From assembly GCF_018977255.1 (NCBI RefSeq), contig NW_024704755.1, positions 15,376,001 to 15,440,000 of the forward strand: a stretch of 64,000 nt of DNA, read 5' to 3'. Below, piece after piece: positions 33,172 to 63,460 of the stretch. Below the pieces are notes generated by a model. That model had not been told where the DNA came from. It searched no databases and saw nothing but the letters and a program-made list of their open reading frames with translations. The position numbers and the translations under genes are program-made. The DNA is from Callorhinchus milii (taxonomy: Eukaryota). Positions within the stretch are counted from its first letter, which is position 1; each line of letters opens with the position of its first letter.

Positions 33172-33177
33172 TTTATT
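33172..33177 (-). terminator. Candidate polyadenylation signal AATAAA of I4 (paralogous site 58199-58204 for I6)
   Basis: About 175 nt after the I4 stop codon; conserved in both inhibitory copies. Confidence 0.4.
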
Positions 33178-40097: not shown

Positions 40098-42731
40098 CGT
40101 GATCAGTTGCTGAGACTGACCATCAACATGTTATTGGGTGTAACAAACATTTGCTGATTGTCTAATATGAAATAATTCGCAGTATCATATGACTTCCTGT
40201 CTCCATGGTCAGAGATGATTGACATACGATTTGCAATGAGAATTGTGCCTTTCAATTGTAACTGAAATCACTCCTCAGATCGGCAGTCAAGAGGAAGGTA
40301 AATATATTCATATTATTGTCTGTTTTTTGTTTTCTGTATTCTTGCAATAATTCTCCATTTTCATCCACAAGTTCACATTTACAATTAGTGTATAATAAAT
40401 AATTATCTGTCTTAAAAGCTGATTTACAAAGCCAGAATTGTGCCTTTCAATCTCTCATTGTGCCTTAGAAATACTCCTCAGATTGGCAGCAAAGAGAAGG
40501 GTTACATATATCCATATTATTTTCTGGTTTTGTTTTCTGCATTCTTGCATTAATTCTTCCTTATCATAGGTACACAAGAACCTAAGAAATGCTGGACAAA
40601 AACATACCAAGCAACATCTCTTCCACCTTCCTGGTGGTTGCATGCTCATATGTCCCAAACTGCCTGTGTACTATATCCCCTCATGTTATTTCCTAGAAGA
40701 AAACTATCTAATCTGTGTTTGTAAGAATCAATGCCTTCCAGCTTCAATCATCTCCCCAGGGAGCCTGTTCCACAGTTTCACTATTCGCTTAGTGAATTAG
40801 TATTTGTGTAGATTCGTTCTGAATTTACATCCCTTGAATCGCAAGCCTTGTCCTTTGGTTTTACTATTCTGGACAAGATGAAACATCCTCTTATGTATCT
40901 ATATTGCCTAACCACTTAAAAATAGCACTCAGAGTGCCTCTCAATCATCTCTTTTCCAGCATGAACATGCCCAATTTACTTAGTCGCTGATCATAGTCCA
41001 GTCATTCCATTCCCTTAATCATTTGGTTGCCCTCCTCTGTATCACCTCAATTTCTCCAATATCATTATTGAACCCTCCATAGATTCGCATTTAAAATACG
41101 TATATAATAAAGATCTATATGTATTTAAAGCTGAACTATAGAGCTAAGGATGCTACACTGTCTCCAGTTTAACATCAAATTTAGGCTACACCAAGAGACG
41201 GCAATCTAATAGAAAGCGCACGGAGAGCAAAATTGACCTTAGAGTCAAATACAAAGATTTGATGTTCTGAGAAAAGGTACACTGTTTCCTCTGGAAACTG
41301 AGCATTGAATGCATTACCATATTGAATATCTTTCCATATTTTATTTAATGGAAATCAATATAAGTACAAAGTTTATGATTTCATTAACAATACATTATGG
41401 TTCGTCAATAGCAGATTTTTTGTAACAATTAATAGTAGACATTAGAGAAATACAAAATAAATGTTTTCATTTTTACAAAGTCAGTTTATCTTCTTTATGA
41501 AAACTACAATTGTAGCTTTATAAAATACTGTTTAGGCCTTAGCTAGAATACTGTGTTCAGTTCTGGGCACCCAACTTTAGGATGGATGTTAAGGCTTTGC
41601 CGAGGGTGCAAAGTAGATTCGCCAGCATGTAACCAGGATTGAGGGACTTCAGTTATCAGGAGAGGCTAGAGAAGCTCGGATTATTCCCTTGGAGCAGAGA
41701 CGGTTAAGTGGAGATTTATTAGAGGTTTTCAAAATTATGAGGGGATTTGATAGGGTGAATAAGGAGAACTATTTCCAGGGTCGGGTGAAGTTGACAAAAG
41801 AGTGGAGATGAGGAGAATTTTTTTCACACAGCGAGTTATTTGGATCTGGAATGCATTGCCTGAAAGGGTGGTGGAAGCTGATTTGGTAAGAACTTTCAAG
41901 AGAGATGTAGATAATTATTTGGGTTCCAGGGCTATGGGGAGAGAGCGGGGACTTGGCATTGAATTGAATAGCTCATTTCTAAGAACCGGCACACACATGG
42001 TGAACCGAATGGCCTCCTCCTATCCTGTATAATTCTATGATTGTGTGATTCTATGACACAGAGTTTCTCTCAATGAATACACTACCAGAGGTACAGCTTA
42101 ATTTTAGAAATATCTCTGAATAAATAATAATAATCCTTTATATGTGATTGATTTGCATCTATTTGCTCACAGCAATGTCTAATTAACATGTATGAAGTCA
42201 ATGATCAATTTTCTCTAGAGAAATGTTTGTCATGATACCCAGAGGAACCACTTCAATTTAGGAGGAATGCAAGATGATCTTCGCTGTACACCTGAGCACG
42301 CAGCTGTACTTCGTTCAGTGTCTCATCTATAAGGTAATAATAACAACTTGCATACACACATATTACGCCCTTCACATGGAGAAGCATCTACAAGTATCGT
42401 GAACTACATCTACAACAATGCAAATTAAACCCATTATGGCATTGGAGCATCAGCCCAGAATATGAGTTTAAAAGCTTGACCTTTGGCTGGAAATCAAACT
42501 GACTTTTTCAAGTAGATATGTGTTACCAGGTGTCAACTAACAGGAATTTTGATTCCACAGCATTCTCAACTGTGGATATTGTTCATGGAGAGTGTTTCGC
42601 ACTTTACATTGTTGAGGTTTCGCACAAAACATTGTTTTATAAATTGTGCACAAGCTTGGTATTGATATTAGGATTGGGAATTGGTAATCATCATTGAAGT
42701 GGAGCCTTGGGTTGAGCAATGCGCCACTTAC

Positions 42732-42974
42732 TTGGTATTTAAGGCTGATCAATCATGAGCACATGAGAAACCGTGAATGTTCAACTAGACTTAAGAAGGG
42801 GATTATTTTCTTGGTGTTTTATGAATCACAAAGTTGTATAAATAAACTGTACTCGAATAACATGTTTCATGAACGATAGGAATGATGCAGAAGAAGGTAA
42901 CGTTTGTCTCTCTGATGTTATTCACGCATTCCAGGATCAGTGCTACTTTGACCGAAAAATCACCAGTAGCAACC
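42732..42974 (-). pseudogene. Decayed X-type V exon upstream of I4
   Basis: Reads GDFSVKVALILECVNNIRETNVTFFC, so the first Cys is retained. Stops follow downstream; the gtaagt donor is retained. Confidence 0.65.
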
Positions 42975-45887
42975 CATCAGAAAAAATAACAAGGACAGAT
43001 TATACATTAAAATACCACTCCCCGCCATCACCCAACACTAGGATTCCGATCAGTTTTGACCCTGATGGTCTGTAACAAGCTGATCTACAACAAGTGTTTT
43101 GTCCAGAAAAATGTTTGTGTGTCATTTGACTTCCTGCCTTTGAGGGTTCAGGAAGTTGAGTTTGCATCGAAAGTGTAATTTGTAAGGTCACGTGATCACT
43201 AATGCTATGATGAGATTAACCCAATCCATTGGAAGCACATAAAAGATTTAAATGTTTCCAGCCTTTAAGGCAGAATTCAAGGTCACGTTGTGGATCTCGG
43301 GATGTTGGGGTTAACTAATACCTATTTGGTGGATCATCCGGGTGTCGAACCCACACAGAAAACCACGGTTAAGATTCTGCCAAGAGGGTTGGAGAGAGCG
43401 AGAGTGAGAGAGAGAAATGGAGAGAGCATGAGAGTGGGTGAGAGAGGTAAAGAAAGTGTTTGAGAAAGCGTGAGAGAGAAGAGGGAGAGAAAGTGATTCA
43501 GAGGGCGAGAGAGAACACGATAGAGAGATGGGGACAGAGAAACAAAGAAAGTGAGAGACAGAGGATCAGAGAGAGGAGGAGGTGAGGGCAGCGTTTCTTG
43601 GTTCATTTCTCAGGACAGATAGATGATTGGAGGCTGTCTTGGCCTCCGCGGAGAGACCGAGGACAGACACCGAGGGATGTGCTGTGTGGTTTCCTCACAG
43701 AAAGCTCTCTCTTTCCCCAGTGAGAAACATCTCTATGTCCGTCATCGCACAGCCCCTCCCCATCACACCCCTGCGACCCCCGACCTGGCACAAACACCAG
43801 CTTGCTTCATGCCCCCCACCCCATCTGCCCCACCATCGCCATCTGCCCCTGATCTCTGGAGTTCCATTTGTGGATCACTCCAAATCATTCCCTCCCTCCC
43901 CTCTTTCAAAGCAGTTGAATAAATATTTGACCACGCTTTTGATCATCGTTTCCTCGCCCCAGCCCCTCGCCCCCTCACATATTTGTATAGCGCCCCCAAA
44001 TAAAAACAGAAATCGCTGGGAACACTCAACAGTTCAGGCAGCATCTATGGAGAGAAGAAAATTAGTTAACGTTTCAGGTCAATGACCTTTCGTCAGAATT
44101 GGGGGATATTGAAAGGGAGCAGTTAATAAGGAAGAACAAAGTGGGCGGGAAAGAAAGACATAGAAAAAGTTAAGTGGAGGACAGTAGATGATGAGGTCAG
44201 AGATTTTGATGGTGCAAGATAAAAGATGGCAATAATGGGAGATTCGAGAAAGAAAAGATGCTTCTGCCACCGAGAGGATGTGTGAGTGGTTAAAGAAGAG
44301 GAGGAGGGCCGAGGCAAGGCTGAGAGGAGATAGGAGTGTTGTTTGTTTGAAGAACAAATCAGATAGATTTCTCGTAGATAATAATATCTCGGGTTACAGT
44401 ACATAGTTTCGGACGCGGCATCTCAGGCGACTGCCAGGAAGGAGGAACCCGAACTGATAGACCTTGGTTTTCTTTCGCCTCGCAAATTCATATGCTTTTG
44501 TGTTCTTAAGTTATTGTTGTTACCAACTTTGTGGGATCAGAAAATAGATCTAAACAATACTTCTCAACTCAAAGATTGGATGCATTTAATAGATTTCTGC
44601 ATGTCCCAGACATTGCTTTCCCCGGAGGCATGGAACAATCAATGGACTACCATTATGAAATTCATTGAACATTTTATTTATTGCAATTCAAAATGTTGAA
44701 ATAAAATCTATGTTCGATTACAATGCACGATACAGGGAACTTCGATATAAATTTTAGGCAAGTGGTATTACAGGTAACCCACAGAAATACAATAGAACCT
44801 ATATTATTTGCAAAGCCATAATCATCACACATACAAATAGCATGAGAATCCGGGTTGTGGAGAAGGCTCTGTGGCTAATGGTACATAGATTTATTAACAC
44901 CATCAACATCATTTTCGGTGACAGTCAGAAAAAGCAAAACTTGATCGACAATTCATGTACAACCGGACTCCGGGATATGCCTTGAAATTATTTAAAACAC
45001 TATATTCGCTGCGTTTGGTGTATTGCATTGTATTAGTAATTGTCGGTTCATTGGAGCCAAATTGACCAAGCTGATGTATAATATTTTGACTTGGGTTTAC
45101 GAAGAAAATCTGTGAAATTGCTGATATGTAACGGGTGAAAAATAAATAAGAGGTGATATTCCAGATATATTCCGACTCCTAAATGGTATAACTCAAACGC
45201 ATTCAAATATATTTTATACAGTATACTGCTCATAATTTATAATCTTCTGTTCTTCCAGTCCGTGTATTCCATTAGCATAATTGAATCACCTCAATCGTTT
45301 CTTCCTCACTTCATCTATAACAAAACAAGTAGTGTAATCGTGAATATCACCAATCCTTTGATTCTATGATCAATTGTAATAATTGCTGATTTTCACCAAA
45401 CAAATTGATGATTCATTCTGCAATGTTTACAACGAGACTGGAACCGTTACTCGTTTAGTTTAATTTTAAACGGTAATTAAACATATTCGGACAACACGAT
45501 TTGCAGTGAGATCGCCTTTTACGTTGGAAGGACGTCTGAAAGCGCTTGGCTGTGTTTGTGGGGCTCCGGAGCTGGAGACGGAATCCGAAGTATTGCATAT
45601 GACCCAAACCCAACCATGTAACACGGATCTGGTTGCTATTGCACGAATGTATTGTTCAATATTTCCGGATACCTGAAAGTTTGGATTAGATATGTTTATA
45701 TCCATTGATTATTAGAGATTCCGCCAACAGAACAAAAAGTAATTTCCGCATTGTAAAGTGTGTTGTCCCTGTAGCAGCGAACAACATGAACCTGTCCCCC
45801 TTTCATTGATAACTGTATGTGCGACGATATAAACACAATATTTGTCAATGAAAAGTCAATGCTCTTTTAAAGCGAAGAATGTTTTAC

Positions 45888-48800
45888 CTTTTATGTGGGT
45901 TGATTGTAAGATAGTCAACAATGATGATGGTCAACAGTAACACTGCCACAAAGCATAACATAAAACGGATAATCATCATAACGGGCATTCCACCATTATC
46001 TGGAAAACAAATTACGAAACTATAACATGTTTACATCAAAACTACTGAATAATCATTCTGTATTGGGAAAATGCACACGTTTTCCTTTTTTTACTGGAAC
46101 GCTATAAAATGCGCATTCAATCAATTGCAAATAACAGCGAATAGTAGTGAAAATCAACGCGCGGCATTTTATTAGTGATGTTATAGAGACACAGTTATAC
46201 ATTATGTGACAGCAGTTCCCCATTGACTGTGCGCTCAGCTTCAAATGTACCGATAGAATGTGTGTTCTGACCCGAGCCATAGAGAGCCACAGTCACCAAA
46301 ACTCATTGCATTGGAAATGTGCTCTCATCCCGAAAATCTATAAAACATCTCACAAGCGAGTTTTATTTTAATGCAGTGATTGTTGTTATAAAGGAATACG
46401 TAACAGCAGATTTGTTCCAAATCGTCCTCAGAAAATGGAGTGGATTAATGAACCAATAGTATTTATGTTTCATTTGTGAACGCGTTTCAGTCCAAAAGTC
46501 CAATTTCTGATGAACGCGCAGGACTATTGCACTTTAGAGAGGTTACTACATGTCAACAACGCTTTGAATGAGACATATTCAGAATTTAAAAACAAAACAA
46601 GAACATACGCAGATTTGAGATATTCTTCGATTCAAAGACTATACATTTAAAATTGGATTTTACATATATATGGAGTTTTCAGCGAGAAACTTATATAACT
46701 ATAAATTGTAGCGTAAATAATGTAAATCCAATTGCCAGTAACAAGGTATTTAACAACAAATGACAGTAAGACAAGTAACTTCCTACCATCAACTTCTGTT
46801 TTGGGTTCAGAAACGGCGTAGACGGCAACTGCTGGAATCCGAAGGCTGACATGAGATACCACACAGGTATAAATAACTCCGCTCTGCACAGACTCTGTCT
46901 CTTCCATAGAGCTCGAAACTTTGTAAAGTCCATTTGAATTCTTTTCTTTGGTGTCATTTATCCCAGTTTTAACTTCATTGCCATTTTTATACCAAGTCAG
47001 CGTTACATCTTCCGGGTAAAACTCAGCCGTTTCACACACAAGAGTCTGAGACTTTGATGAATCTCTTTCAGAATCTCTGTGGAATATCTTCAGTGGGGTT
47101 GGGGGGACTGTAGGGCAGACAGTGGGGCAGAATCACATTACGGGTGAGCAGTTGGAATATGAAATGTTATTCCCAGTTGAAATGTATATGAATTGATTCC
47201 GAGCGACATTTTAACAAAGGAAGGTTTTCCGAGACGTTAACCCATGTGACGGGCGCTATATAAATGTACGTTATTGTTGGCATAACAAGGAATCTGGATT
47301 GCAACGGCAAGAAACTGATCCTGTTCAGATGTTTTATTTGGAACAACGTTTCTGGTACCAATATTAAACGATGCCCTGCAGGAGGTCCAGATATTCATTC
47401 ACCAAATTAACAGTTGGATGAAAGGATTTAACTTCGACGATAAGATGGGTAAACGTGATTTATGTTTGATAGATCTGAGAAGTAATTTGATTGAGCTGTC
47501 AACGAATACTAAAATAGTGCATTCTTTCCAATAGAGGAATAACAATAGAAAGGGACACAATCCTAATACTTTGGCTAAACCTGGTGAGACGTGAAATGAA
47601 ACCATTCTATTCACATGTAGTTCAGTGAAATTGTGGAAACCACTCCCATAAGTGGCCTTAAATGCCGATTTAAGTGGGATATTTATTGATAAGGGAGAGA
47701 AATAAAAGTTTTAAGGGGTCTGGAAAGTGGCGGAGAGATTGGATGAAAAGTTCTGCCACCGTTCTCGAACAACAGTAACCTATATGTATTGGGCGCTCTT
47801 CACACAGGATACCGTCCCGGAGAAAACTGGAGATTTCACCACAATTAGAGACATAAGCAAATCCTCCCCTTTCACTCCAACATTGATTTTGTTCTGCTCT
47901 GTTTTTAAATTTGATAAGTTTCCAACGAATTTTCCATAATTAGAACAGGTAATTCAAAATCATTTCACTACTGTTTGTGGGACATTGTTGAGCGCCAATT
48001 GTTCATGTTATTTCAAATTGTCTAAGTGTGTTTAAACATTTGCCTTTGATATGAATCAGTAATTATTTAAATGTCCGGACCCCAGTACAAGGGATTTTGA
48101 TTAATAATAATAATGCTTGAACCTGAAGCCATAGGGCTCTCGCTCAAACATTGCATTTCTTTGTCTGTGTACACTATAATCTTCATGTCTTGATGTGGGA
48201 AATCTGACTAAATGCGTTCAGGTCAGAATAAAATACCATATAGAGCTAATATTCTACTGACGGCAGGAGGAGGGCTATACATGTTTGAAAGCGTTGCATA
48301 ACGGAGTTATTAGCGACTCAAATTCCCACTTTGCTGTGTGGTATAAACCCGCCGTTCCCTTCAGTACAGTAACGAAGGGGGAAATTGCATTTGAATAATA
48401 TTTCGTTGATAAAATGTGTTTTGGGTTAAAGTCAAATCTGTTCCCGTGTCCTGTGCTATCATAACTTTTTGTGAGAGTAGAAAATAGTACTCTCACAAAA
48501 CGTTATGACAGCACAGGACGTCAGTTTAGTGTAAAATAGTTTATCCATAACGATTTCTGTAGTCCTGTAGCTCAGTGGTTAGAGCACTCGCTTTGCAAGT
48601 GAGAAACCTGAGTTCAATTCCAGGCAGAGGGCGAAACCTTGGGCAAGTTTCCTTACTCCACACAGAGCCTAATAATAATCCCTCCAAAAAAAAACAATAA
48701 TTAAATTGGTCATTTTCAATCTACGACTGTTTGTGGGACATTGCTGTGCGCAATTGGCTGCCGCGTTCGCCCACAAATATAGTCAATTCACTTTACAGTA

Positions 48801-49505
48801 TACTCTGTGAAGCGCTTTGGGACGTCCTCCCGACGTGAAAAGCGCTATATCAAATGCAAGGATTATTATTATTATTATTATTATTATTATTTCAAATTGC
48901 CCCAATACTCGCCTTTCAGCATTCCCCGTTCCTGTTGCACTCACACTTACCATGTACAGTTAAACTGGTTCCAGTCCCATTTCCTGCTATTTTCCCCTTA
49001 TGGACCGCTGCACAAATATAGACTCCGGAGTCGTTGAAATTCAGATTTAGGATCTGGAACGTTTTGTAATCAAATATTCTCCTGTTGTCAGGTCGTGTGT
49101 GCAAATATTCCCTCTCTCCTCGCTTCCACCAATATAATGTTGTATCTGAACCAGATTGACTGTCAGCAAACTTGCAGCCGAAGGTAACGTTTTCACCTCG
49201 GATTGCTGTTCGCTCTGCAGGATACTGAATCACTCTCATCGATGTACCACCAGTAACTGTGAGAAAATACATCAAATCTATCATTAGTAATTGTGGAACC
49301 TAAAACTAGAAAAGTGACAAAATAGCTATAGGACAGGATGGAGAGAAGGTGGAAGAAAGAAAAAACAGATGAACGTATTCATTAAACACATTTTGAAACT
49401 CTTCATGAATATCGTTTTGTATTTAAGATCCGCTGTAGTAAAACAATTACCTGTGAAAATAATCCCCATCAGAGAAAGACAGGGGAACACATCACTCGCC
49501 ACCAT
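45888..49505 (-). CDS. A5: VJ-C1-TM receptor with Arg in the TM (putative activating); recent duplicate of A3
   Basis: Leader 49451-49505; V 48951-49256 (1 aa different from A3); C1 46787-47107; TM 45888-45999. Canonical splice sites. Confidence 0.85.
48558..48888 (+). mobile_element. Young full-length tRNA-derived Deu-domain SINE with (TTA)n tail
   Basis: A/B-box head gtagctcagtggttagagc..gttcaattcc and tail aaagcgctatatcaaatgcaaggattattatt. Flanked by an ATTTC duplication (48553-57 and 48889-93). Absent at the paralogous site near 24070. Confidence 0.9.
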
Positions 49506-50395
49506 CGTGATCAGTTGCTGAGACTCACCATCAACATGTTATTGGGTGTAACAAACATTTGCTGATTGTCTAATATGAAATAATTCGCAGTGTCATATGA
49601 CTTCCTGTCTCCATGGTCAGAGATGAGTGACATACGATTTGCAAAGAGAATTGTGCTTTTGAATTGTAACTGGAATCACTCCTCAGATCGGCAATCAAGA
49701 TGAAGGCAAATATATTCATATTTTTGTCTCTTTTTGTTTTCTGTATTCTTTGAATAATTCTCCATTTTCAGTCCCCATATTAACATTGATAATTGGTATA
49801 TAATAAACAATTATATGTCTTTATAGTGGATATACAAACCTAATGAAACTACATTTTCTCCAGTTTAGCATCAGTTTTAGGCTACACCATGGAACGGCAA
49901 TCCAAGGGAAAGCACACAGAGAACCAAAATGATCTTTGAATCAAACACAAATGTTTGGTTTATCTAATGTTCTGAGCAAAGGTACAATGGTTTCTCTTGA
50001 ACCTAAGCCTTTAATCAATCAATATATTACCATATTGAATGTAGTTCCATATTTTATTGAATGCAATTCAATATAATGAATACAAAGCATATCTGGATGA
50101 TTTTTTAGTAACAATTTAACAATAGATATTACAGAAATGCAAAATAAATGCTTCCATTTTTACAAAATCAATTTATCTTCTTTACAAACTCTACAATCAT
50201 ACAGAATCTCTTTCCTTTACAGGATAATAATCCTTTACACGTGATTTATTTGCACCTATTTGCACGCAGTCGTGTCCCATAAGTAGACATGAAGTGAATG
50301 ACCAATTTTCTCTGAGAATTGTTGGTCATGATACTCAGAGGACCCATTTCAACTGAGGAATGATACTAAGAGATCTTTAACCTACCCCTGAACAG

Positions 50396-51814
50396 TCAGT
50401 CTGGACGTTGGTTCAACGGCTCATCTAAAGGATAAGAAGAACACTCTGCAAACATATTGCGCCTTTCACGCGGAACAGCTTCTCCGGACATCTGGAACTA
50501 CAGCTATGACAATGCAGAACACAGCATTACAGCATTGGAGCATCAGCTTAGAATATGGACTCAAAGTCTCAACCTTGGGCTTAAACCCAAAGTGCACATG
50601 TTACCAGGCATCACCTCGTTTGATTGCACAGCTTCCTCAGTCTCAGCTGTGGATAATGCCCGTGGATGGTGTTCAGTGGCGGTCAGCAGAAGTGAAACAT
50701 ATGTATATTTTGGAGGGTTAGACTTTCAGTCCGAGAGGGTCGGCACAAAACTTTCATCAGACTATGTTTTATGAATTGTGCACAAACTTGATGTTAGGAG
50801 TGGGAATGGTCATCGTAATAGATCCCTGGGTTGAAACGTCAAGAAACGCCACTTACTTGGCATTTACAGCCGATCAACTGTGAGCGCATGAAAAACCGAG
50901 AGTGTTCAATTGCCCCTTTGCCTTTTGTATGGATTTTGAATTACTGCTATGAATAATATGGATAAATGATGTAACAATTATTGTTTTAGAATTGATAAAA
51001 TGTATTATTTGCTAATGTGGTGAGTTGTATTATTTTGGTCTTAAGTTATGCAGTGATCGAAATTAAAATTGTATTTCCACTTAATATGCTTTTAATAATA
51101 TTCTTGCATTTGGTATAGTGCCTTATCATGTCTTCGAGACGTCTGATTCGCTTTTAAAATGAATAAAATGCGAAAGTTATTAATGGACAAACAATATTAA
51201 TAACTATATAGCATTCACCGCATTTATTACTTTTTGTGTGATTTCTAAATGCCAATTTCGCTCTTCATTCACACTCACTGCACACAATTAATCGTGATCC
51301 AGATCCTCTTCTAATTATTGATCCCTGATGGACCACTGCACAGCGATAGACTCCAGAGTCCTGTAAACTCACATTCAAGAACTGGAAGAAGCCGCTTCCT
51401 TTAGTTTTTACACCAAATAGTTTCCTGCGATCCTCCTTTGTATCCAAATAGCCGCTCTCACCCTTCTTATCCCACTGCACCTTCACTCCTGAACTGCCTT
51501 GAGGGAAGGGAAAGTTACAGTGGAAGGTAACGTGTGTCCCTCTGATGGCAGCCACAGGGTCGGGGATTTGAGTCACTTTCACCGAAGCATCGCCATCAAC
51601 TGTCAGAAAATAAAGTCAAACACTGACTTCTTAGATGATAAGCAATGGAGAAAACAAATGAGTAAAAGAGGAGAAAACGTAAGTGTATAAGATAAATGTC
51701 ACATGGAAACAAGTTTGCACATATTTCATAGAAGAACTGAACTATATAATGAACATATATACCTGTTGAAATAATATGTAAGGCCGACAGGTACAGGAAG
51801 ACAACACTCACCAT
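50396..51814 (-). CDS. X5: C1-less leader-V(J) gene, possibly secreted single-V protein
   Basis: Leader 51763-51814 (MVSVVFLYLSALHIIST). V 51279-51599 has an intact acceptor and donor and the motifs C..W..DSGVYRC..GSGSRLIV. Candidate in-frame stalk exon 50605-50646 and terminal exon 50396-50424 (DEPLNQRPD*). Leader and V are well supported; the downstream exons are inferred. Confidence 0.65.
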
Positions 51815-54800
51815 GTCTGCCTCTGGCTCTGATGGTCTGTCACAAGTGACCGTGGATTATTTGGTACAGAGTAGGTCGCTGTGACACTGACTTTCTGTTT
51901 CTTTGGTTTCGTGAAATGTTGCAGGTGTGCAGAATGCAATTCAAAATCACACTTTTACATCAAATTTGTAAAAATAGTAACCCATCCTGTGAAGATCAGA
52001 AAACAAGCTGAGCGTATCTAAACTTAAAAAACACACCGTTCAGCGTCATTAATAGTTGGTGCATTAATAGTTCGTCATTAATTAATATGGTGCTTTCTCC
52101 AACTGGAAATGTTGATTTGAGCACTAACTCGTGGAACAAGTGGTGTCAGAAACATTCCAATTTGATGGGTAATCTCTTCTCATGCTTTTATCCAACTGTC
52201 CCCTGTTTATAGAAATTAACCTTTCCCTCTCTTCTGGCATAGTGCGTCCCTATTATCACTCCATGCAAATGTTTACCCCCATCCCTCTAAACTGTCCAAT
52301 TGTCGGTCCATCTCCAACTTACCCTTTGTATCCAAAATCCTGGCCACTCAACTGTGCTCCCCATTTTGTCCACTTGGTGCTAGAAGTTCAATTTCTACCC
52401 ACAGCAGAGACAGCATAGTCAAAGCAAGGATGATATACTCTATGTTTCTCTCCCTCTCTCTCTCTCTCTGCAACCTTGACTCTCTGCTTCTTGCGCTCCA
52501 AGATCATTCTGCTGCTTTCAAAATTGTCGACCATTCCATCCTACTTGACCATCTCTCTTCCCTCATCCATCTGCTTTGGACTGCACGGCCATCTGCAGAA
52601 TATTTCAGGTCTGTATCATCGACCCCCTTCTTCTTCTCATCTACATGGTCTCTCTCTCTCTCTCGATATTATCCTCAGACAAGCGATTAGCTTTCACATT
52701 TATACGAGTGACAGATAACTCTACTTTTCAACTTCTACTATTGATTTCCAGATCTTCTGATGCTCTCACCGTTTGCGTGTCAAGACATGGATGAGCCCAG
52801 ACTTCTTCGAACTTCTAATGGATGATGGAAGCCATCCTTCTTGTCTACTGTTAACAACTCCTTTCTCCCAGGGATTGCTGCACCCTCTCCGCACCACCAT
52901 GAGTGGCCGAACCTTCAATTTTATGCCCACAAAATATACACAGTTGCATCATTTCACATTGTATCCCGTGAAGCTCTTTTGAATTGTCTCAACAACATGA
53001 AAACGTGCAACATCAATCAAGGTTAAGACTGTAATTATTACTAGATTCATATGCCCTAACCTCTGCCAATCCCTCCACACCCACTTTGTCTCATTCTTTC
53101 TCAATCTCTCTTTGGTTCTGACTCAATCCTACCACTTGAAACATGTCTTATCAGCCCCCCTCTCTCCCCCTCACCTGTCCTTGCTCTGTATCTAACCTAA
53201 ACCCTTTGAAGCCCTCCAAAACAATATCCGATGTGAAGGATGCTATAAAGGGATGATGTTTAATCAACTGATAGCAAATGTGTTTCTTGCATCTTTTGTA
53301 ATTGCTCAGATGATTGTGAAGGAGTTTGAAGAAACATTAATCTGTAGCTCCATCTGACATATTACAATTGCTCATAAATTATGGCATCGGATGGCGCTGC
53401 AGACTACACCATATTTATACTATGAAAAGCTGTAACCTACACATTTGTTTCCCTTGTTCACCAGTTGCACCTTTGTCTGACTGGCTCAGGATTTCTGTGT
53501 GTACCCTGACCCCTGTGCTGCACCATGGGAAGCTTCCAGCCACTATTTCCTGAATCTCTGGAACTCCCTGCCTCTATCCCTGTACCACACAGTATTTTTA
53601 AGTGTCTTCAAATCTCACTTGAAGATTTTGCGCTTCGATTGTGTCTATGGTCAATTTACCTTTCTCCCTGGCTCAGAGTCAAGTTCTGCTACTGTTCAGT
53701 CCTGGGTATGCTATATAAATTCAAGTTGTTGTTGTTGCTTCGATGGTTCCATCAGAGCAGATGTATCGAATGCCCGATAACTCTTTTTGCTCTGCTGCTC
53801 TTCTGACACATGCAGAAATCTTTTACCGCGCTTATGAGTATCCAAACAAACTGACATTTTTATGCCACCGACACAAGGAAAGTTTCCTTTGGCTGGAATG
53901 GAATGCACACTTTCCAGAGGCATAGACTGGGAGGAATTACTCAAGGACAAACCAGTTATAGAAGATTATGCTGCACTAGCAGGACAAATATAGAAAGTAA
54001 AGCAGTGGCAAAATAGACAAAAACACCAAAATGGATCAAGAGGAAATAGCAAGTGAGATAAAGGAGAAGCAGAAGATTTATAAAGCTTGTAAATAGAAGG
54101 AGATGGTGACCATTGGGCTGAATACAAGACTGTACAGAAAGAGACGTATAGGATCCAAGAGCCAACTGGAAAAGAAAATCTAAACTCAAAAACATAAACC
54201 CTCACATCCTTTGAATATTGCAACAGGGAAGATGTCAAAATTTTAAGGGAATCAGATAGGGTTATATAAAAAAAGAATGGACTCCCGGTAGCAAAAATGA
54301 AATGAATAATTACTGGAGCTTTTTTTTATCAGTAAAGACATTAAAATCATGACCACGAACATACTACATTTTCAGCTTGACTAAGTTGGCAACACTCTCA
54401 CTGCTGAGTCAGAATTTAAGCGTTCAAGCCCCAAGTCTGGACACGGAAATCATATAGACAAAATGACACTCCAATGTCATACTGGGGTGGTGGGGAGAGG
54501 GGCGGGAATGCAGCATTTTTGGAGATGCTGTCCTTCGGATGAGAAATTAAACCAAGGGCCCAACTGCCTGTTCATCAAAGATCCCATGTCATTATACAAA
54601 GCAGAAGGGAGTTTCTCCAGATTTCCTGGGCAACAGTCCCCCAAATTGGTCACATACTTTATGGCTGTTTGTGGCGTATTGCCGTGCACTAAAAAACACA
54701 GCCACTGAACTTTAGAGGATACTCTATGAAGTGCTTTGAGACATCCTCCAAAATTTATAATGAGTGTGTATCCACATAGATTATGCTGTCAGCACCTGAG

Positions 54801-57800
54801 GCCAGAAGGCACTGACTGAAAAGGAAAGCCTCTGTCTTGTCAACGTTCAACTGGAGGAACGACATCCAGCACTCATCAGGACTTGATGTCCAAATAGGCA
54901 ATCAATCAGAACAGCAGTAGTCCTGGAAACAAGTTCAGAAGCTGACATAAATTGGGATGCTATTCAGCTACATGTGGAAGTTAACTTCATGTCTGCAATA
55001 ACATCACTGAGCAGGAGCATGTTATTATTAAAAAGGAAAAGGATAGATCTCTAAATGACTTGGATTTATAGATCCAAATAAAATTCACACGTGATATCAA
55101 TTTGGGACAACTGGGGAATCAGAGGAGGCAGGAAATGTTGGCCAAAATAACTTGACAGAGTATTTACATGGGCTGCTAAATTAAGTATAGATAAATGAAT
55201 GGTAAATTCAATATAGATAAATTAATGGTAAACTAAGTATAGATAAACTTATGCGATAGACCAATAGGAAACACGAGCATTTCATGGACTGGATAGAAAT
55301 TGCCAAGGGGAAAGCTGAAATAAATCCTGGTGTGTTAGCTGACTCTTCACTCATATGTCAAAACAGTGTGAGGCAGCAATAAACAAGACAAACAGGATGC
55401 TGTGCTCTTTGCTGCACTAAATCAGTTGAGTTCAAACCCAAAATATCACACTTATCTTTGGCGAGACCACACCTTCATTATTGGAGAGCGATGTGCCTTC
55501 CCTTGACCCAACACAGCTATCCAGCTATCGGCCCATCTGCAACCTTCCTTTTCTGTCCAAGGTCTTTGAGAAAGCCGTTGCTCCCAATTTTGCACTTTCG
55601 TCTCCTCCATGAGCTCCTCCAATTGGGTTTCTATGCTGTGCACAGCACGGAAACTGCTATGGTCAAGGTCACAAACGACATCCTGACCATGTGTCCAAGG
55701 CTCCCGATGCCTCGTCGTCCTCCTTGACCTCTCCGCCACTTTTGACACTGTGGATCACTCAATACTCCTCCACTGCCTCTCCTCCCATGTCAACCTTCAA
55801 AGTTCTGTCCTTGACTTGTTCAGGTCCTACCTTTCACAACGACTCCACTTCGTCTCAGCGAACAGCTTCACCTCCAGCCCCGAACCATCTCGTATGGCAT
55901 TTCTCAGCGCTCTGTCCTCCATCCCCTCCTCTTCACCCTCTACATGCTCCCACTTGATGGCATCATCCACAGACATGGCGTAAACTTCCCGAAATATGCG
56001 GATGACCCCACATGCATTGCCATACTCTGCCACTGCCTCACCCCCATAGGCTGCTGAAATCCATACCCATGCATTCGTTACCTCAAGGCTCGATTATGGA
56101 AATTCCCTCCTCATCGGCCTTCCCAACTCTTCCCTTCACAAAATGCAGATCATCAAAAACTCTGCAGCTCATGTACTCTCACGCATCAGGCTCCGTGACC
56201 CCATCACTCCCACCCTCGCCCGACTCCACTGGTTCACCATCTATCAGAGGATTGAATTCAAGATCTTCGTCCTCACTTCCAAGGCCATCCATGACCTTAC
56301 CCCTCTTTCCTTTCTGACCTAGTGACTCCCTACCAAACTGCCCATTCGTTCCATTCAGCAGGCTCCGGCCTGCTCCATGTCTTCCGCCTGACCCGCCCTA
56401 CCATCGGTGGCCGGGATTTCAGCCTCTCTGCACCTACACTCTGGAATTCCTTCCCACAGTCTCTTTGCCTCACTTCCTCCCTTGCCTCCATGAAGGCTGG
56501 TCTCCAGATCCTCCTTTTCAATCATGCCTTCGGTCGCTCTCCCACCTCTCTGCCTTCCCCCACCGCTACCCTCCCCCTCTATAAATGTAATTTTGTTGTT
56601 GTTGTTGTCACTGTGACATAATGGGGCTGTTGAGTTCCAACAGACAGCATGGAAGAAAGCAACGAGGATGGCCCCCAGGATTAGAGGAATGAACTTTGAG
56701 AGGTATTTAAAATATTAAATGGGATTGAAAAAGTATACGCAGATCTATAAGTTTAGAGTTACAAAGGCAATATCACAATAGATCCCAGGTTTTACCATGG
56801 TGGTGGGGGGAACTTGTAGTGCGTTCTGAAAGGATGTGATCAGATAGGCCAAAGGGTCTTCTTCAATGAAACCAATTGTGAGTGAAGAGGTAGGGAAGCC
56901 CAAGGGTGCACTGGTTGTACTATTGGAGTTTAACAAGCTAAAGTCTCAAAGCTTGCTATTGAAAGCACTATCTGACGAGCTTCACTGCTTGTCCAGCGAG
57001 GACTACTCTTTTCATTAGGTTTTTGGCCTACAGAGTTAACAGTATCTGAGTGGGAAGATACCCCACTCCCAGTGAGAGGTCTACTCCTTGAAGTACCTTT
57101 CTTTTCGACCGTGCCTTTGGTCAGCTTCCTCCCCCTCCCCCGGCTCGGTCCTGGGATCCGTTACTGTGAAGCGCTCTGTGATGCCGTCCGGCGTGGAGGG
57201 CGCTGTATAAATCCATGTGAATCCAAGTTGTTGAAAGTGATTCCAAAGTTCTTTTGCTAAGCAAGTCACACTGGACGTAGCTCAGCTACAAGGCCACGCT
57301 GTTTGCTTACTGGCTCCAATGACTGTGGCTGGTTGAAATTAGACATCCAAAAAGCACTGGGTTTAGTCTACACTAAATAGATAGCAAATATCAGGAATTC
57401 CTTGGAAACCCATAATGAGCAGCACAAATAAGCATGAAATGTGTGAGAGGATAGATCCCCCATCCCCCTGACCCTATTGGCACACATCCGTGTGGATTGA
57501 GCGGAGGTTGTACGAGTTGGTGCGTTGCCATTTTACTGAAGCAACACTTTAAACATGTATTTTTAAAAAAGATTTTTTGTTAAATTAGTAAAAAACACAC
57601 AGTATCACATAAAGCCACATCACGTTACACTATATCCTGTAAAGCGCTTTGAGATATTGTGGCGACGGAATAAGTCACTACATTAAATTCATGGATAATT
57701 AATAAAAACAAATTTGAATTAAACCCACTCTACAGTTCAGGCTTTACTTGTAGTGAGCCAGGACATGATGCCCACAACGATATACCTCATGTTGTAAGAA

Positions 57801-58549
57801 TGCATATCTGTTGTTACACAAACAAAGAAATATTGTGCACAGTTGTTACAGCCACTTTACTACAATAGCCACAGCCTAATGGATGGAAACAGTTTGTAAC
57901 CCCTTGCTCTATATATAATCTGAGAGAGCGAGACTTTTGTAATGGAATTATTCTGTGACATTTAGAAATACAGCAGAACGATTGGGGTTTTAATACTTAT
58001 TTGTTTCATGTGAGATATATTTTTAGCATTTAGGTGAACAGCTCAACCGTTCAACACCCACGCCTCAACTTTTTCACTGGGTTGGATGAATTGTGTCATA
58101 TTTTGTTGACAGCTTTTATGTTAGACCTTACCAAGTGTTGTTTCATTAGTACTGAAGAGACAGAGTGACCAGAAGAGACTGATTTATGCAACTTGTTTTT
58201 TATTGAGAGGTTGATTGAACATGTTACACAACAGTTCCATTCGTTTGAACTCTGGTTTTAGTTTTGCAGCAGTTAAAGAGCTATATTCTAAACAAATAGT
58301 TCAGTAGATACCTTTATGGTTTGGTCAAATTCACATTAAAATAATGTTTAGCATTTAAGTATAGCTATATAGATATAATAAGTAACTTTCCAAGACATTT
58401 CCTAAAGACATCTAATGTAATAAACTAATAAATGAACTCATGGTTCAAACAGGTTAAAAGAGAATAGCAGCACAGGAATAATATGCACATTGTTCACTTT
58501 GGTGGAAAACAACACCTAATATACAACAATATCAGTTTAGGAGCCTGTT

Positions 58550-61500
58550 TCATAACTTGGATCTTGGTTCCCTGCAGATAGCTGCTGCTGCTCCTCCGTG
58601 GTTTCTCACATGTAGCTCTGCATACTCTGTATTCTTAACTCTACTTTTAGGTTTTCCTGTTTTATTGGAAGGATGTAAATCCAGAGCGGCATATGTCAGC
58701 TTGTGCTCCGCTGCTCCTTGCTTGGTCTGTAAAGGCAATTTTTGAGAATTTGATTATATTAATTCATTTTATTCTTCAGTAATCTCCTCAAATAGGCAGT
58801 CACTTCTCCTATAAAGAACTGAGTCAAACAGAATCCAGCAGCTACAATTTCTACCACGAATAGGTTAGTAAAGAAAAGTGAAAATCAATCAGTTTATGAG
58901 TTGTTCATTGACCTACAGAAATGTGGGTATATATTTCTGTATATAATTGATGACCCAGTGCCTTATAGATTGATGCACAATAGCTGGTCTTTTTCAAGAA
59001 AAATAAATGTCTATACAGTGACAAATTGTCGTGAGCATATCACAGCCCAGGACAGTGTCAGAGAGTGAACATTAGAGGAGAAAGAAAGATTAACCACAGA
59101 AATGTTGCAAACAGTCTTATAGTGAACACTGAAGTGAGTTCCACTCTATTTACCAAAGCAAGGAAATCCAGTTGAATACAAAAGGTTTATGTTTCGTATT
59201 TGTGTTTCAAAGATATACCTGGGCGTACACAGTGCTCTCCTGTTGTTTGGGTCTTGGAGTTTTCTTGGAACTGGTCAAATTCAAGGTGACATAAGCCACC
59301 GGCTCATTCTCTCCTCTGTGCATCGTCTATAAAACAGATTGTGATCACAACAACAGCAACACATTGGATTTTAGAGCACCTTTCACTTCGGAAGGACATT
59401 CCAGGGCGCTGCTGGAATGTTGTCCTCACTGTTCTGAAGATTGCTGTGTAAGTACTTATCTGAATGTCCATAAGTTTAAAATATTTAAGACATAGCTTTC
59501 ATATATTTTAAAAGCAGACAATTTTATTGAATACTCTGTCACCAAATGTATGTCACCGGGCACCTCATATTTGAATGATACATTGAGGCTGCAGAGATGC
59601 TCTGAGGGAATACATTTAAAATGTTCTAATTTATTTCTGAAGAACGGTATCTTTCCATCACAACAACCCTGTTTTCAGATGAAACATCTGCTGAGTTGAA
59701 TTTAATAAATGTACCTGCTCTTCGCAATGACTCGATCCCTTCTGGTTTCTGCGTGGACCTTAGAAGGAAATTAACAGAAGAAGAGTTCACTCAATTTCCA
59801 CAACAGTAATTTTGAATATATTTTGGTTAGACTGAATGAAAAACGATTCAAAACCCACAAGCTGCCAGAATCGTTTTTATTTTTAAAAAAGTATAAAGTT
59901 GTCTTGCATCTAACTCTAATTTAAGCCCAGGAGTAGAATCAAATAAATCACACCACCTTAACTACAAACTATCTTGCCCTCTCAATCTTATTCCTGTAAA
60001 CAGCGCTATACCAAATGCAAGGATTATTATTAATATTATTATTATTATTGTTCTCTGTAGCTCCATCATAGAGTCCCTCTTTCCCAAGCCACCTTCAAAA
60101 TTTTCAACAAATTAACCAAGAGAATAGATAATTTGGGTATGAGATGTAAAACCGAAGAGGTAATATTAAACTGATATAAATTGTCAGTGTCAGAACTAGA
60201 ATACTGTATGCAGGATTGTTTACCTCACTTAGGAAATTTACCAGACTGATTCCGGGGAAGATTGGTGCTGCGAGTTCAGTGGCCCAGGCAGAATGTGCAT
60301 TTTATATAATAAAACATTTTCTCGTTGTATTTTATAAAATTAATCAATTGTAACACGATATGGAAAAGATGGGTTAATGGGATGTGGACTCTTTAAAGAA
60401 GGAATAAAGACACCATAGGCTGAATGACCTTCTGCACTGTACATTTCTGTAATTGTATCACAACAGATTTCAGACATTTGTTGCATGGAAATTTCTGATT
60501 AAATATGCAGCTAAATATAAGCAGAGAGAGATTCTGTTAGGGCATTTGTCAATCAATCGCAATATATTAATGATTGGCGTCACTTTACAGGATGTTTTTC
60601 TCTCCTTGTTATCTGGAATTCTCTGCTATTAACTGAACTTTTGTGTTAAATTAAACATTTACATTTAACCTGAATTAAACAGGAATATATCTTACCTTTC
60701 TTTTTGCTTAATTGCCATTGCTTTCCAATGATGAACAAAAGCAGCAGAAATGCCAGGCCTCCCCCTGCACATCCAGCGATCAGCGCATAAGGAAGCTGAG
60801 CGTCACTCTCTACAAGGACAGTATAAACTGAATGTGTTATTGAACACAGCAATGAATTATAGTTTCAGTAAATGCGCGGTGAATCCGAATAGAGATATGT
60901 TAGCAGGTTTTATTATTTGATATTTTATTTTTAAACAGGGTCTTAGTAGATCCGTAGGAATCCAAGGCACTTTTAATGAGAAACTAGATAGCCGAGCTCG
61001 TCAACAAGACTTAAAATTGCAGGACAGTCACTGGGGTGAGGGGTCTCGCCAAATCTATGACAAATACTATTCCGATTAAGCTAGAATGGTGAACCTCTCC
61101 ATGGACATGAAGCACATTCCATTCCAGACACCAAAACAATTAGAGGTGAACGACATTATTGAGCAGAGACCAGGAGTTTGAAATGTGATGAGTTTTTAAA
61201 TCCTTCTTCTCAGGCAGATGGTATGAATCTTTTCAATTCAAAGACGATACACATTAAGCTGATTGTTATTTTGTATATATTTATATGGAGTATTCGGCTA
61301 CAAAACTATATGATCATAATCTTCAGTGCAAACCAAATTAAATATTTTCCAAAAACAATTCAGTTAATAACAATTAACAGTAGGATATTGGCCAATTAGT
61401 GGAGTCCTGTAGCTTAGTGGTTAGAGCAATCACCGCACAAGCTAGAGACCCTGGCTTCCATTACTGGGTCAGGCAAAACATTGGGCAAATTTCTTTACAC

Positions 61501-62104
61501 CACACGTCTCTGTATTCATCTAGCAGTAAGTAGGAATCCAGTTGTTAGTCAATTGGCAGATTGCTTTCCTGTGGATAATGATAATACCTTAAAATACAAT
61601 AATTTGAAGTACTTCGGTCACTCAATCCACGACTGTTTGTGGTACACTGCTGTGCACAAACTGCTGCCAAGATTCACCCACAAAACATACATTCAATTCA
61701 CTTTCCAGTTTATTTGTGAACCGCTTCAGGCTTCTCAAAGACGTGATACAGCGCTATATCAAATGCAAGGATTATGTTTATTGTGAAATTACCTGTGTTG
61801 GATTTAGAAACTGAATATCTGGCAACTGCTGGAATCCGGAGGCTGATGTGAGATACCAGACAGGTATAATCAACGCCACTCTGTACAGGCTGTGTCTCTT
61901 CCAAATAGCTCGAAAATTCATAAAGTCCCTTTGAATTCCTTTCTTTAGTAGAATTTATCCCAGTTTTAACTTCATTGTCATCTTTACTCCAGGTCAGCGT
62001 TATATCATCTGGGTAAAATGCAGCCGTTTTACACACAAGCGTCAGAAATATTTTCGAATCTATTTCAGAATCTCTAGCGAACATCTTCAGCGGGGTAGGG
62101 GGGA
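58550..62104 (-). CDS. I6: inhibitory VJ-C1-TM receptor, 5'-truncated by the window edge (leader and V expected just beyond 64000)
   Basis: C1 61793-62104; TM 60696-60809; cyt1 59715-59758; cyt2 59219-59326 (VAYVTL, TVYAQ); cyt3 58550-58726 (LTYAAL, TEYAEL). 62.2-64 kb is homologous to the V-C1 intron of N1 (2.3-3.75 kb). Confidence 0.85.
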
Positions 62105-63136: not shown

Positions 63137-63460
63137 GTGGAGTCCTGTAGCTCAGTGGTTAGAGCACTCGCTTTGCAAGTGAGAGACCTGGGTTCAATTC
63201 CAGGCAGAGGACGAAACCTTGGGCACGTTTCCTTACTCCACACAGAGCCTAATAATAATCCCTCCAAAACAAAAAACAATAATAAATTGTCATTTTCAAT
63301 CTACGACTGTTTGTGGGACATTGCTGTGCGCAATTGGCTGCCGCGTTCACCCACAAATATACAGTCAATTCACTTTACAGTGTGTTCTGTGAAGCGCTTT
63401 GGGAAGTCCTCCCGATGTGAAAAGCGCTATATCAAGTGCAATGATTATTATTATTATTAT
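63137..63460 (+). mobile_element. Young full-length tRNA-derived SINE, same family as the copy at 48558
   Basis: Near-identical to the 48558 element along its full length; inserted in an AT-rich (TAA) tract. Confidence 0.9.

Follow-up and report, generated by a model that had tools for sequence, protein, structure and literature searches.

An intact leader and V exon pair in a Callorhinchus milii receptor cluster is most likely the truncated 5′ part of an inhibitory receptor gene

X5 is an intact pair of a leader and a V exon in Callorhinchus milii, and most likely represents the 5′ remainder of an inhibitory receptor gene that was once longer, not a purpose-built soluble or cassette gene. 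On balance, we think it probable that X5 is a 3′-truncated receptor fragment of what we here call the X lineage, and that a recent duplication or gene conversion has preserved its exons. The window, that is, the whole stretch of 64,000 nt that was analysed (scaffold MU249845.1:15,376,001-15,440,000, assembly GCA_018977255.1), is part of a cluster of more than 390 kb composed of non-rearranging VJ-C1 receptors, all encoded on the minus strand. Unless stated otherwise, positions are those of the window and features lie on its minus strand.

Results

The leader exon of X5 (51763-51814; ATG at 51814-51812) encodes MVSVVFLYLSALHIIST plus the first base of the next codon, and is followed by a donor (GT at 51762-51761) that reads CAG/GTATAT. 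Two full-length X genes from the same cluster (L001 and L002) have leader exons with 94 % identity to this one, and the X5 leader is also present in the protein models XP_042196354.1 and XP_042196356.1. Intron 1 (51600-51762; 163 nt; acceptor ...ctgacag at 51600/51601) shares 97.5 % identity with that of X3, the duplicate of X5, 95.7 % with that of the L002 X gene and 90.7 % with that of the L001 X gene; its retention speaks against X5 being a processed, retro-copied pseudogene. The VJ-type V exon (51279-51599) is intact, of phase 1-1, and ends in ...GSGSRLIVC. It matches the Pfam V-set domain (E 1.4e-8), keeps the canonical Cys, Trp and YxC as well as a J-like GSGSRLIV, and its AlphaFold model adopts an Ig V fold (pLDDT 86). 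At the protein level, this V domain has 92 % identity with A0A4W3H538 and 81-82 % with XP_042196354.1, and the extra Cys that closes it is conserved across the X lineage. The phase-1 donor, a/GTGAGT, is near consensus, with the last exonic base being A in X5 only and G in X3, L001 and L002. As for features of a rearranging V segment, the J-like GSGSRLIV resides in the same exon, GTGAGT follows directly, and no heptamer was seen there. The exon boundaries, the V-set match and the RLIVC end thus bear out what a preliminary description had read from the letters, namely that X5 is equipped with a leader of its own and that its VJ exon is intact and closes with a Cys.

What should follow such a V exon is apparent from its full-length relatives. 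These genes have the layout L-V-C1′-TM-cyt-ITIM-ITIM (exon map of L002), and the L001 X gene is organized in the same way, with an intact C1′ exon that is skipped by its protein model; the C1′ exons are found at 11140-11463 of L001 and 11654-11986 of L002. Behind V and C1′ come a stalk/TM exon (…WAGCAAGGFAFLALVIIIGKRC…), a short cytoplasmic exon and two ITIM exons, the latter marking the full-length X paralogues as inhibitory receptors. Among the protein models, XP_042196354.1 (LOC103185896) joins X-type leader and V to a TM and a VAYVTL/LTYAAL/SEYSEV tail, while XP_042196356.1 continues from X-type leader and V into C1′. X5 has its leader, terminal Cys and V donor in common with LOC103185896 and with the gene of XP_042196356.1 and A0A4W3H538, and resembles them in the 5′ flank, in intron 1 and over the initial 185 nt of intron 2, but lacks their C1′, stalk/TM, cytoplasmic and ITIM exons altogether.

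At the DNA level, leader, intron 1 and V of X5 are 91-96 % identical to the full-length X genes. The match of the window to these genes is confined to ~52400-51094, with homology ending 185 nt into the V-C1′ intron, at ~51094. The remaining intron stub (51094-51278), with identities of 84 % to L001 and 79 % to L002, harbors an in-frame stop (51265-51267), 12 nt inside the intron, as well as an AATAAA (51223-51228) 38 nt further on; the same stop and AATAAA occur in the full-length X genes, marking them as ancestral intron sequence. Since the leader-intron-V tract is more identical to L002 (94-96 %) than are its flanks (74-79 %), it appears conversion-like. Between 51278 and the ATG of the next gene, A5, at 49505, tblastn returned no match to an A-type C1, an X-type C1′, the inhibitory stalk/TM/ITIM tail or an Arg-containing TM, and across the window the C1′ query matched C1 exons of A genes only. 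It thus holds true, as previously proposed, that with X5 a second and divergent V lineage is interspersed among the A genes and that X5 has no C1 of its own before A5.

A5 (45884-49505) is an activating-type VJ-C1 receptor, composed of a leader (49451-49505), a V exon (48951-49256), a C1 exon (46787-47107) and an Arg-containing TM/end exon (45884-45999); its duplicate A3 has an Ensembl model (A0A4W3H622) with matching exons. Upstream of X5 lies the 3′ part of A6 (LOC103185949; 58598-62102), an inhibitory VJ-C1-TM-ITIM gene (C1 61794-62102; TM 60694-60810; ITIM 59219-59398 and 58598-58729). ITIM members of the array are A6, A4 and A1, and Arg-TM members are A5, A3 and A2. On record within 23350-64000 are only two protein-coding genes, A4 and A6, and the protein-coding gene lists contain no entry at the positions of X5, X3, A5 and the A3 V exon; these lists comprise protein-coding models only. 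Likewise, no protein model contained the V of X5 or X3 in word-indexed searches of proteins of 69-490 aa. The NCBI refers to the neighbors of X5 as ‘tyrosine-protein phosphatase non-receptor type substrate 1-like’ or ‘SIRP beta-1-like’, and C1-skipping isoforms, in which V leads directly to TM, are annotated for neighboring genes. An old Gnomon model, XP_007902905.1, chains exons of adjacent genes. In an Rfam scan, tRNA-like SINE heads were the sole matches.

X3 (26574-27109; leader 27058-27109, V exon 26574-26894) is the duplicate of X5 in the neighboring 24-kb unit and shares with it both the truncation and the blocks that follow. The two V exons are 96.3 % identical, and the Tyr of YxC is replaced by Cys in X3. 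In the other units, merely decayed X-type V remnants are left: X4r (42878-42964), comprising the first third only, at the X5-equivalent unit position 5′ of A4; X2r (18906-18974), with a stop codon, 5′ of A2; and X1r (7354-7425), 5′ of A1. DNA alignment showed the remnants to keep the intron-exon boundary, and their reading as processed retrocopies was discarded, as the leader-V join in the L001 tblastn match turned out to be the translated polypyrimidine tract of a retained intron. No further truncated X copies were found 5′ of activating genes in L006 and L007 (15.47-15.61 Mb).

Is the X5 V exon under constraint? It shows no excess conservation over its introns. X5 and X3 differ at 12 of 321 V-exon positions as compared to 25 of 587 in the non-coding flanks (p 0.86), and the V changes include 10 nonsynonymous and 1 synonymous; in that same duplication, the A5/A3 V exon accumulated a single difference in 306 positions (p 0.003). 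The dN/dS ratio proved uninformative as a test of function, ranging from 0.7 to 1.1 even between full-length genes (0.80 for the V exons of L001 and L002, which are presumably functional). A ratio near or above 1 is also expected of diversifying selection on a receptor V domain.

Downstream of the stub, a junction segment (50913-51093) is common to X3 only, without homology to full-length X genes or remnant units. It is followed by two backbone blocks, R1 (50592-50912) and R2 (50224-50591). Homologues of R1 directly follow the decayed X-V remnants in L001 (7793-8124) and in the X1r, X2r and X4r units, and R2 is 73-75 % identical to 42127-42464, 6550-6918 and 17959-18325. Together, R1 and R2 are common to the remnant units at 73-80 % identity, and this backbone is found 5′ of every other A gene as well, beside decayed X-type V remnants. 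The preliminary description had placed two small exons here: a 42-nt exon within R1 (50605-50646; cag/...CCTG/gtaaca) and a terminal exon within R2 (50396-50424, stop codon included; DEPLNQRPD). Both stretches are present as written. As exons, however, they do not stand out from chance: the acceptor of the 42-nt stretch scores -0.7, lower than every acceptor verified in the array, shuffling of the interval yields an equally good symmetric open exon in 19 % of cases, and indels disrupt both proposals in the remnant units, where older copies of the 42-nt stretch measure 43 nt (+6/-7 indels) and the terminal ORF is broken by 1-2-nt indels. The acceptor of the terminal exon is strong, with a score of 5.8.

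Copies of the terminal exon near 6.7, 18.1 and 42.3 kb had further been taken for a frameshifted TM. The copies exist (the 73-75 % matches of R2), and the strings ACSG and GLFALLL are present in them, but in different frames. Local DNA alignment of the four true TM exons with the five downstream regions stayed at shuffle level (z ≤ 2.2), and an nhmmer profile of the true TM exons, built without that of L002, which contains a single N, had no match after X5 (best E 19; leave-one-out controls 5e-18 and 2e-21). A frameshifted TM in R2 is thus not supported, and true stalk/TM and ITIM exons are indeed wholly unlike this block. A search for a hidden TM yielded weak 19-mers only (Kyte-Doolittle mean ~1.9-2.0 vs 2.5-3.0 in true TMs), which paralogues do not share; the counterpart of the R2 19-mer (at 50552) in the older X4r copy shows no hydrophobicity. 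A plus-strand ORF at 50457-50774, overlapping the proposed exons (105 aa; 138 aa in X3), was dismissed as a chance ORF; it has no Pfam match and is interrupted by stops in older units. As to an ancestral V-stalk-TM layout of the NKp30 type, a V-stalk-TM-ITIM product is annotated elsewhere in the cluster (XP_042196354.1). That model, however, omits a C1′ exon present in its gene, and both readable full-length X genes hold C1′ between V and TM, arguing against this layout as the ancestral one.

Discussion

How might an intact leader and V exon have come to stand alone? As a truncated gene, X5 would have retained everything from the promoter flank through the leader exon, intron 1 and the V exon up to nt 185 of the intron that follows. 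The C1′ exon and everything 3′ of it would have been lost in X5 and in its tandem duplicate X3, the stub being joined to the backbone that precedes each of the A genes. That this backbone also follows three decayed X-V remnants (X1r, X2r and X4r) suggests the truncated arrangement to be old, and the V exon would already have decayed in three of the five units. Its intactness in X5 and X3 may be explained if a full-length X gene recently donated the leader-to-V tract, by copying or gene conversion, after which duplication of the unit would have given rise to the present pair. We infer that X5 is an orphan exon pair or a unitary pseudogene without a functional product of its own, and that its main evolutionary role, if any, might be that of a germline gene-conversion partner of full-length X genes. 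X5 is still fully open and has a good donor, and may be called a putative pseudogene. Speaking against a fragment, leader and V are open in both copies, X5 has the canonical Ig residues and the GTGAGT donor is near consensus; in addition, the intronic stop and AATAAA would permit a soluble V product.

Truncated or orphan V-exon pseudogenes occur in expanding clusters, including KIR, LILR and SIRP pseudogenes and germline pseudo-V segments. Such partial duplicates of 5′ exons in tandem arrays, with unequal crossing-over, gene conversion and intron-like evolution, resemble X5, which may be described as an unannotated truncated paralogue of the kind left by unequal crossing-over in fast-evolving immune-receptor arrays.

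Among known receptors, the SIRP family (SIRP-alpha, -beta and -gamma) is reminiscent of the shark cluster in that a non-rearranging VJ-type V precedes C1-set domains and that inhibitory (ITIM) and activating (charged TM) members are paired in one cluster. In line with this, A6 matches SIRP-alpha (2wng, E 1.4e-14) and SIRP-gamma, and the X5 V model superposes on the SIRP-alpha V (TM about 0.74). The shark genes, with one C1 domain and not two, may be called SIRP-like; a SIRP-like succession of V, C1 and TM is seen in A6, A4, A1, A5, A3 and A2, whereas X5 is V only. The human SIRP cluster itself has a single-V, TM-less member, SIRPD, and SIRPB1 isoforms differ in their V ends. NKp30 (NCR3), with its single V-stalk-TM layout, resembles the C1-skipped isoforms XP_042196406.1 and XP_042196354.1, and NCBI names the C1-skipping isoform of A4 ‘NCR3-like’. 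Yet NKp30 combines an Arg-TM with a short tail, the C1-skipped shark isoforms carry ITIM tails, and X5 has no TM; no TM exon with a basic residue for adaptor pairing follows it. Neither the PDB sequence matches of the X5 V (E ≤ 0.01) nor its top 50 Foldseek matches, comprising VNAR, TCR V-alpha, V-lambda and SIRP-alpha, included an NKp30 chain.

In cartilaginous fish, UrIg and UrIg2 (PMC12227049, PMC10751288) likewise have a germline-joined VJ exon followed by C1-type domains, and UrIg2 (9dmx) is the best PDB sequence match of the A6 C1 domain (E 6e-16). UrIg2, a V-C1-C2-C3 disulfide-linked dimer (PMC12227049), is not a V-C1-TM-ITIM multigene family, unlike the shark cluster, and X5 consists of leader and V only. 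Our literature search retrieved UrIg/UrIg2 and MHC-linked VJ genes, and no description of the present C. milii cluster.

It appears unlikely that X5 instead encodes a soluble single-V protein serving as decoy or ligand trap. Such a protein could arise if the V donor were unused and the transcript ended at the intronic stop (…RLIVCSECE) and the AATAAA at 51223-51228, or if the 42-nt and terminal exons were used (…RLIVC-TETEEAVQSNEVMPDEPLNQRPD). Leader and V are intact, the V model is a confident Ig V fold closed by the lineage-conserved extra Cys, a stop and AATAAA stand right behind the donor, X5 has no downstream partner exon of its own, and the terminal acceptor is strong. Against the first route, the stop and AATAAA are ancestral and unchanged in full-length X genes; against the second, the 42-nt exon does not exceed chance, its acceptor being poor, and both small exons are frame-broken in paralogous units. 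In addition, no sign of purifying selection on the V exon was seen, and X5 is covered by no protein model.

Slightly less probable still is that leader and V of X5 constitute an alternative 5′ cassette of A5 (and those of X3 of A3), with the V donor joined to the A5 C1 or V exon. X5 and A5 are on the same strand, the intact V donor (51279) is located 1.8 kb 5′ of the A5 start codon, and, as all array exons are of phase 1-1, splicing of X5-V to A5-V or A5-C1 would be in frame. Exon-skipping isoforms are annotated for neighboring genes, with XP_007902905.1 even chaining adjacent-gene exons. The arrangement is found in both duplicated units, yet these stem from one recent duplication and so amount to a single observation. 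Conversely, A5 has a start codon, signal peptide and V of its own, X-type V is joined to A-type exons in no model, and no V-V-C1 protein was found among the closest relatives in other cartilaginous fishes. In addition, A2, likewise of the activating type, is preceded by a decayed X V, and the X V exon is unconstrained whereas the A V exon is conserved. We regard as more doubtful again that X5 or X3 V, transcribed from the X promoter and spliced to an A C1, would generate an activating/inhibitory pair sharing a ligand-binding domain via inter-unit splicing. If true, the cassette would couple an Arg-TM activating end to the V domain of a lineage otherwise linked to ITIMs, in a holocephalan, and exemplify a paired receptor made by inter-unit splicing. 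No test supports either of the two fates raised beforehand, secreted decoy or splicing into A5, and the evolutionary pattern is that of an unconstrained fragment.

Finally, an assembly artefact, that is, a collapsed or mis-joined repeat in the duplicated cluster, is highly improbable: while the region consists of a tandem duplication, at 92-98 % identity, with many SINE/LINE fragments, the same junction is present in X5 and X3, whose copies differ by substitutions and indels, the window contains no N, and the downstream blocks are common to three older units.

X5 itself, most likely a truncated front end, is of little weight, and the surrounding cluster is more informative. The window lies in a holocephalan cluster of germline-joined VJ-C1 receptors in which ITIM-bearing members alternate with Arg-TM members, and which also shows annotated C1-skipping, ‘NKp30-like’ isoforms and traces of duplication, truncation and gene conversion. 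The cluster thereby bears on the evolution of paired receptors and of VJ-C1 antigen-receptor-like genes in early jawed vertebrates.

Results

The leader (51763-51814) and V exon (51279-51599) of X5 are as the preliminary description had them, that is, a leader of its own and an intact VJ exon ending in Cys. The V exon matches Pfam V-set (E 1.4e-8), carries the canonical Cys, Trp and YxC, a J-like GSGSRLIV and a C-terminal Cys followed by a phase-1 donor (a/GTGAGT), and is confidently predicted, from an alignment of relatives, to fold as an Ig V domain (pLDDT 86). In fold, this model is closest to solved V domains of shark VNAR, TCR V-alpha, V-lambda and SIRP-alpha; its top 50 fold matches include no NKp30 chain. 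Likewise upheld is the lack of a C1 exon before the next gene: between the X5 V donor and the start codon of A5, tblastn revealed no C1, C1′ (the distinct C1-set domain of X-lineage genes), TM or ITIM exon.

The window sequence (no N, GC about 38 %) is identical to Callorhinchus milii GCA_018977255.1, MU249845.1:15,376,001-15,440,000, and its minus strand carries all receptor exons. From high to low coordinates, ORF listing and tblastn gave the order A6, X5, A5, X4r, A4, X3, A3, X2r, A2, X1r, A1, wherein X5 and X3 consist of leader and V only, X4r (42878-42964), X2r and X1r are V remnants, and the A genes are VJ-C1 receptor genes, either inhibitory, i.e. ITIM-bearing (A6, A4, A1), or of the activating type (A5, A3, A2). 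A6 comprises C1 (61794-62102), TM (60694-60810) and ITIM exons (59219-59398, 58598-58729); A5 comprises leader (49451-49505), V (48951-49256), C1 (46787-47107) and an Arg-TM exon (45884-45999). Given a tandem duplication of about 24 kb (44856-62471 versus 20939-38709, 92–98 % identity), A6-X5-A5 and A4-X3-A3 represent one recently duplicated triad. Each copy holds an inhibitory VJ-C1-TM-ITIM gene, a truncated X leader and V, and an activating-type VJ-C1 gene with an Arg-containing TM end (…MPVMMIIRFMLCFVAVLLLTIIIVDYLTINPHKR, then stop). Judging from related loci, the cluster reaches across at least 15.22-15.61 Mb of MU249845.1. Between the receptor genes lie long tracts of low complexity and of retroelement origin (52400-58200, occupying much of the A6-X5 interval, 27700-33300, and also 7.8-9.2, 17-20 and 43.3-44.4 kb), their ORFs being Ser/Leu/Pro-rich or bearing motifs such as …RAFSLSAPTLWNS…. 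A tRNA-derived SINE resides in the V-C1 introns of A5 (48558-48880) and A6 (63137-63462), with tRNA-like heads on the plus strand (48565-48627 and 63145-63207) that are the sole two Rfam matches in the window; further copies, up to 96 % identical, occur in the cluster loci L001 and L002.

Over window positions 23350-64000, the NCBI protein-coding gene lists contain A4 and A6 only, and the V of X5 or X3 was absent from proteins of 69-490 aa in a collection of 5.8 billion sequences. The names given to A proteins by NCBI and UniProt ('SIRP beta-1-like', 'tyrosine-protein phosphatase non-receptor type substrate 1-like', 'tapasin-related protein-like', 'NCR3-like', 'immunoglobulin lambda-1 light chain-like') are automatic labels on one family of germline-joined VJ-C1 receptors. 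A5 (45884-49505), A3 (21961-24682) and A2 (about 11579-15200) have open leader, V, C1 and TM exons and are not among the NCBI protein-coding genes listed for their stretches, A3 being covered solely by the Ensembl/UniProt model A0A4W3H622. An older RefSeq model, XP_007902905.1 (382 aa), chained the A2 C1 exon to the A1 V and C1 exons (1965-12822), a chaining that the current A1 model (XP_042196416.1) no longer has.

Used as protein queries, the leader and V of X5 matched three C. milii proteins and no others. In XP_042196354.1 (LOC103185896, 268 aa), DSKNVIRYLLWAGCAAGGFAFLALVIIIGKRC… comes after an X-type leader and V and is itself followed by a tail with VAYVTL, LTYAAL and SEYSEV; in XP_042196356.1 / A0A4W3H538, C1′ follows a leader and V that are likewise X-type and 92 % identical to those of X5, and it also follows the X-type V of A0A4W3H256. 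Exon mapping of the XP_042196356.1 gene (L002) gave the order leader, V, C1′, TM, a 45-nt exon and two ITIM exons. At LOC103185896 (L001; gene region L001 10001-15546), an intact C1′ exon lies between V and TM (L001 11140-11463), left out of the sole model (268 aa); its YTC motif reads YNC. Because both maps place C1′ between V and TM, the X lineage is an inhibitory VJ-C1′-TM-ITIM gene. The ancestral V-stalk-TM ('NKp30-like') layout once proposed must be abandoned, as such a product is a splice isoform of genes that contain C1′. C1-skipping NCBI isoforms joining V directly to TM/ITIM exons exist for A4 (33350-40097) and A6 (58.5-64 kb); the isoform accessions for these two genes are XP_042196406.1 ('NCR3-like isoform X2') and XP_042196404.1.

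X5 can be aligned with full-length X genes over 52400-51094, at 74–85 % identity in the 5′ flank, 91–96 % across leader, intron 1 and V exon, and 79–84 % in the first 185 nt past the V donor. Homology ends at about 51094, roughly 420 nt short of the C1′ position in L001. Since the leader-to-V tract is far closer to the L002 gene (94–96 %) than its flanks are (74–79 %), it looks, judging from sequence identity, like a gene-conversion or recent copy tract. The break is followed by a 180-nt junction segment and then two backbone blocks, R1 (50592-50912) and R2 (50224-50591), which are found again upstream of the genes A4, A2 and A1, and also in L001, each time directly after an X-type V exon that has decayed to its first third. 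The V exon is decayed in three of the five window units, and array units are about 75 % identical to one another. With R1/R2 directly behind the decayed remnants, the truncated layout thus predates the array units.

Both exons previously proposed 3′ of V fall into these blocks, and neither is borne out. The 42-nt phase-1 exon sits in R1; its three older paralogous copies measure 43 nt (one 6-nt and one 7-nt indel), and its acceptor scores −0.7 versus 1.2–4.5 for all verified array acceptors, using a crude consensus matrix suited to ranking only. Acceptor-like and donor-like sites in the interval are as numerous as in shuffled sequence, and a symmetric open exon as good as the 42-nt stretch arose in 19 % of shuffles. 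The terminal exon (DEPLNQRPD, then stop; R2) has a good acceptor (5.8), a score that taken alone means little, and 1–2-nt indels among its paralogous copies, so that no reading frame is conserved. Identity at the proposed exons does not exceed that of the surrounding backbone. The strings interpreted as a frameshifted TM (ACSG..GLFALLL) are indeed present, in different frames, yet their TM origin finds no support: true TM exons of five genes gave no alignment to R2 above shuffle level, and an nhmmer profile of true TM exons found nothing in six downstream regions (best E 19), while leave-one-out controls picked up divergent TM exons with E-values of 5e-18 and 2e-21. Two plus-strand ORFs over the proposed exons (50457-50774, 105 aa; 25633-26049, 138 aa) have no Pfam match, are broken in older paralogous units and are probably chance ORFs.

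The V exons of X5 and its duplicate X3 (26574-26894) differ at 12 of 321 positions (10 nonsynonymous, 1 synonymous), their non-coding flanks at 25 of 587 (Fisher p 0.86). In that duplicated unit, a single difference over 306 positions separates the V exon of A5 from that of A3 (p 0.003 against X), and none separates their leader or TM exons. In X3, Cys replaces the conserved Tyr of YxC (…DSGVCRC…), along with nine more amino-acid changes relative to X5; the last exon base of the V donor is A in X5 alone and G otherwise. Among all X V exons, dN/dS is 0.7–1.1, even between the two full-length genes, so it gives no means of telling relaxed from diversifying selection. The leader-to-V tract being young, even a dead fragment would be expected to keep its frame open. 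Between the C1 exons of A5 and A3 (22868-23179), 13 of 321 positions are changed, giving 9 clustered amino-acid differences, with intron 3 99.4 % identical and leader, V and TM exons (almost) identical. This pattern points either to patchy conversion by another paralogue or to C1 being under diversifying selection. A decayed activating-type gene, with a stop codon in C1 and an Arg-TM-like exon, lies downstream of the inhibitory gene XP_007902902.2 (L007 23440-24023); decay thus affects activating members in other parts of the cluster, too.

Discussion

What is X5? Of its structure we are highly confident; the best-supported reading, and in our view a probable one, is a 3′-truncated gene fragment without a product of its own. 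A soluble V protein, which the intronic stop and AATAAA just past the V donor would permit, is unlikely, as both are ancestral intron features that full-length X genes have too. Even less probable is an alternative V cassette spliced to A5 exons: since every exon is phase 1-1, its product would stay in frame, but there is neither a model nor a precedent among relatives. Mis-assembly, conceivable in so highly duplicated a region, is very improbable given a junction common to two diverged copies.

As a truncated fragment, X5 stems from the X-lineage VJ-C1′-TM-ITIM genes, whose C1, TM and ITIM features it lacks. It is neither a rearranging V segment nor a retrocopy, and the features of NKp30 are not found in it. 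Taken together, the genes of the cluster work in the manner of SIRP-type paired receptors, and in kind they are akin to the non-rearranging VJ-C1 genes that have been discussed in cartilaginous fish (PMC12227049, PMC10751288). Our literature search found no published description of this C. milii cluster. X5 was previously unannotated, the kind of element is already known, and unless transcripts show otherwise, it is of little interest.
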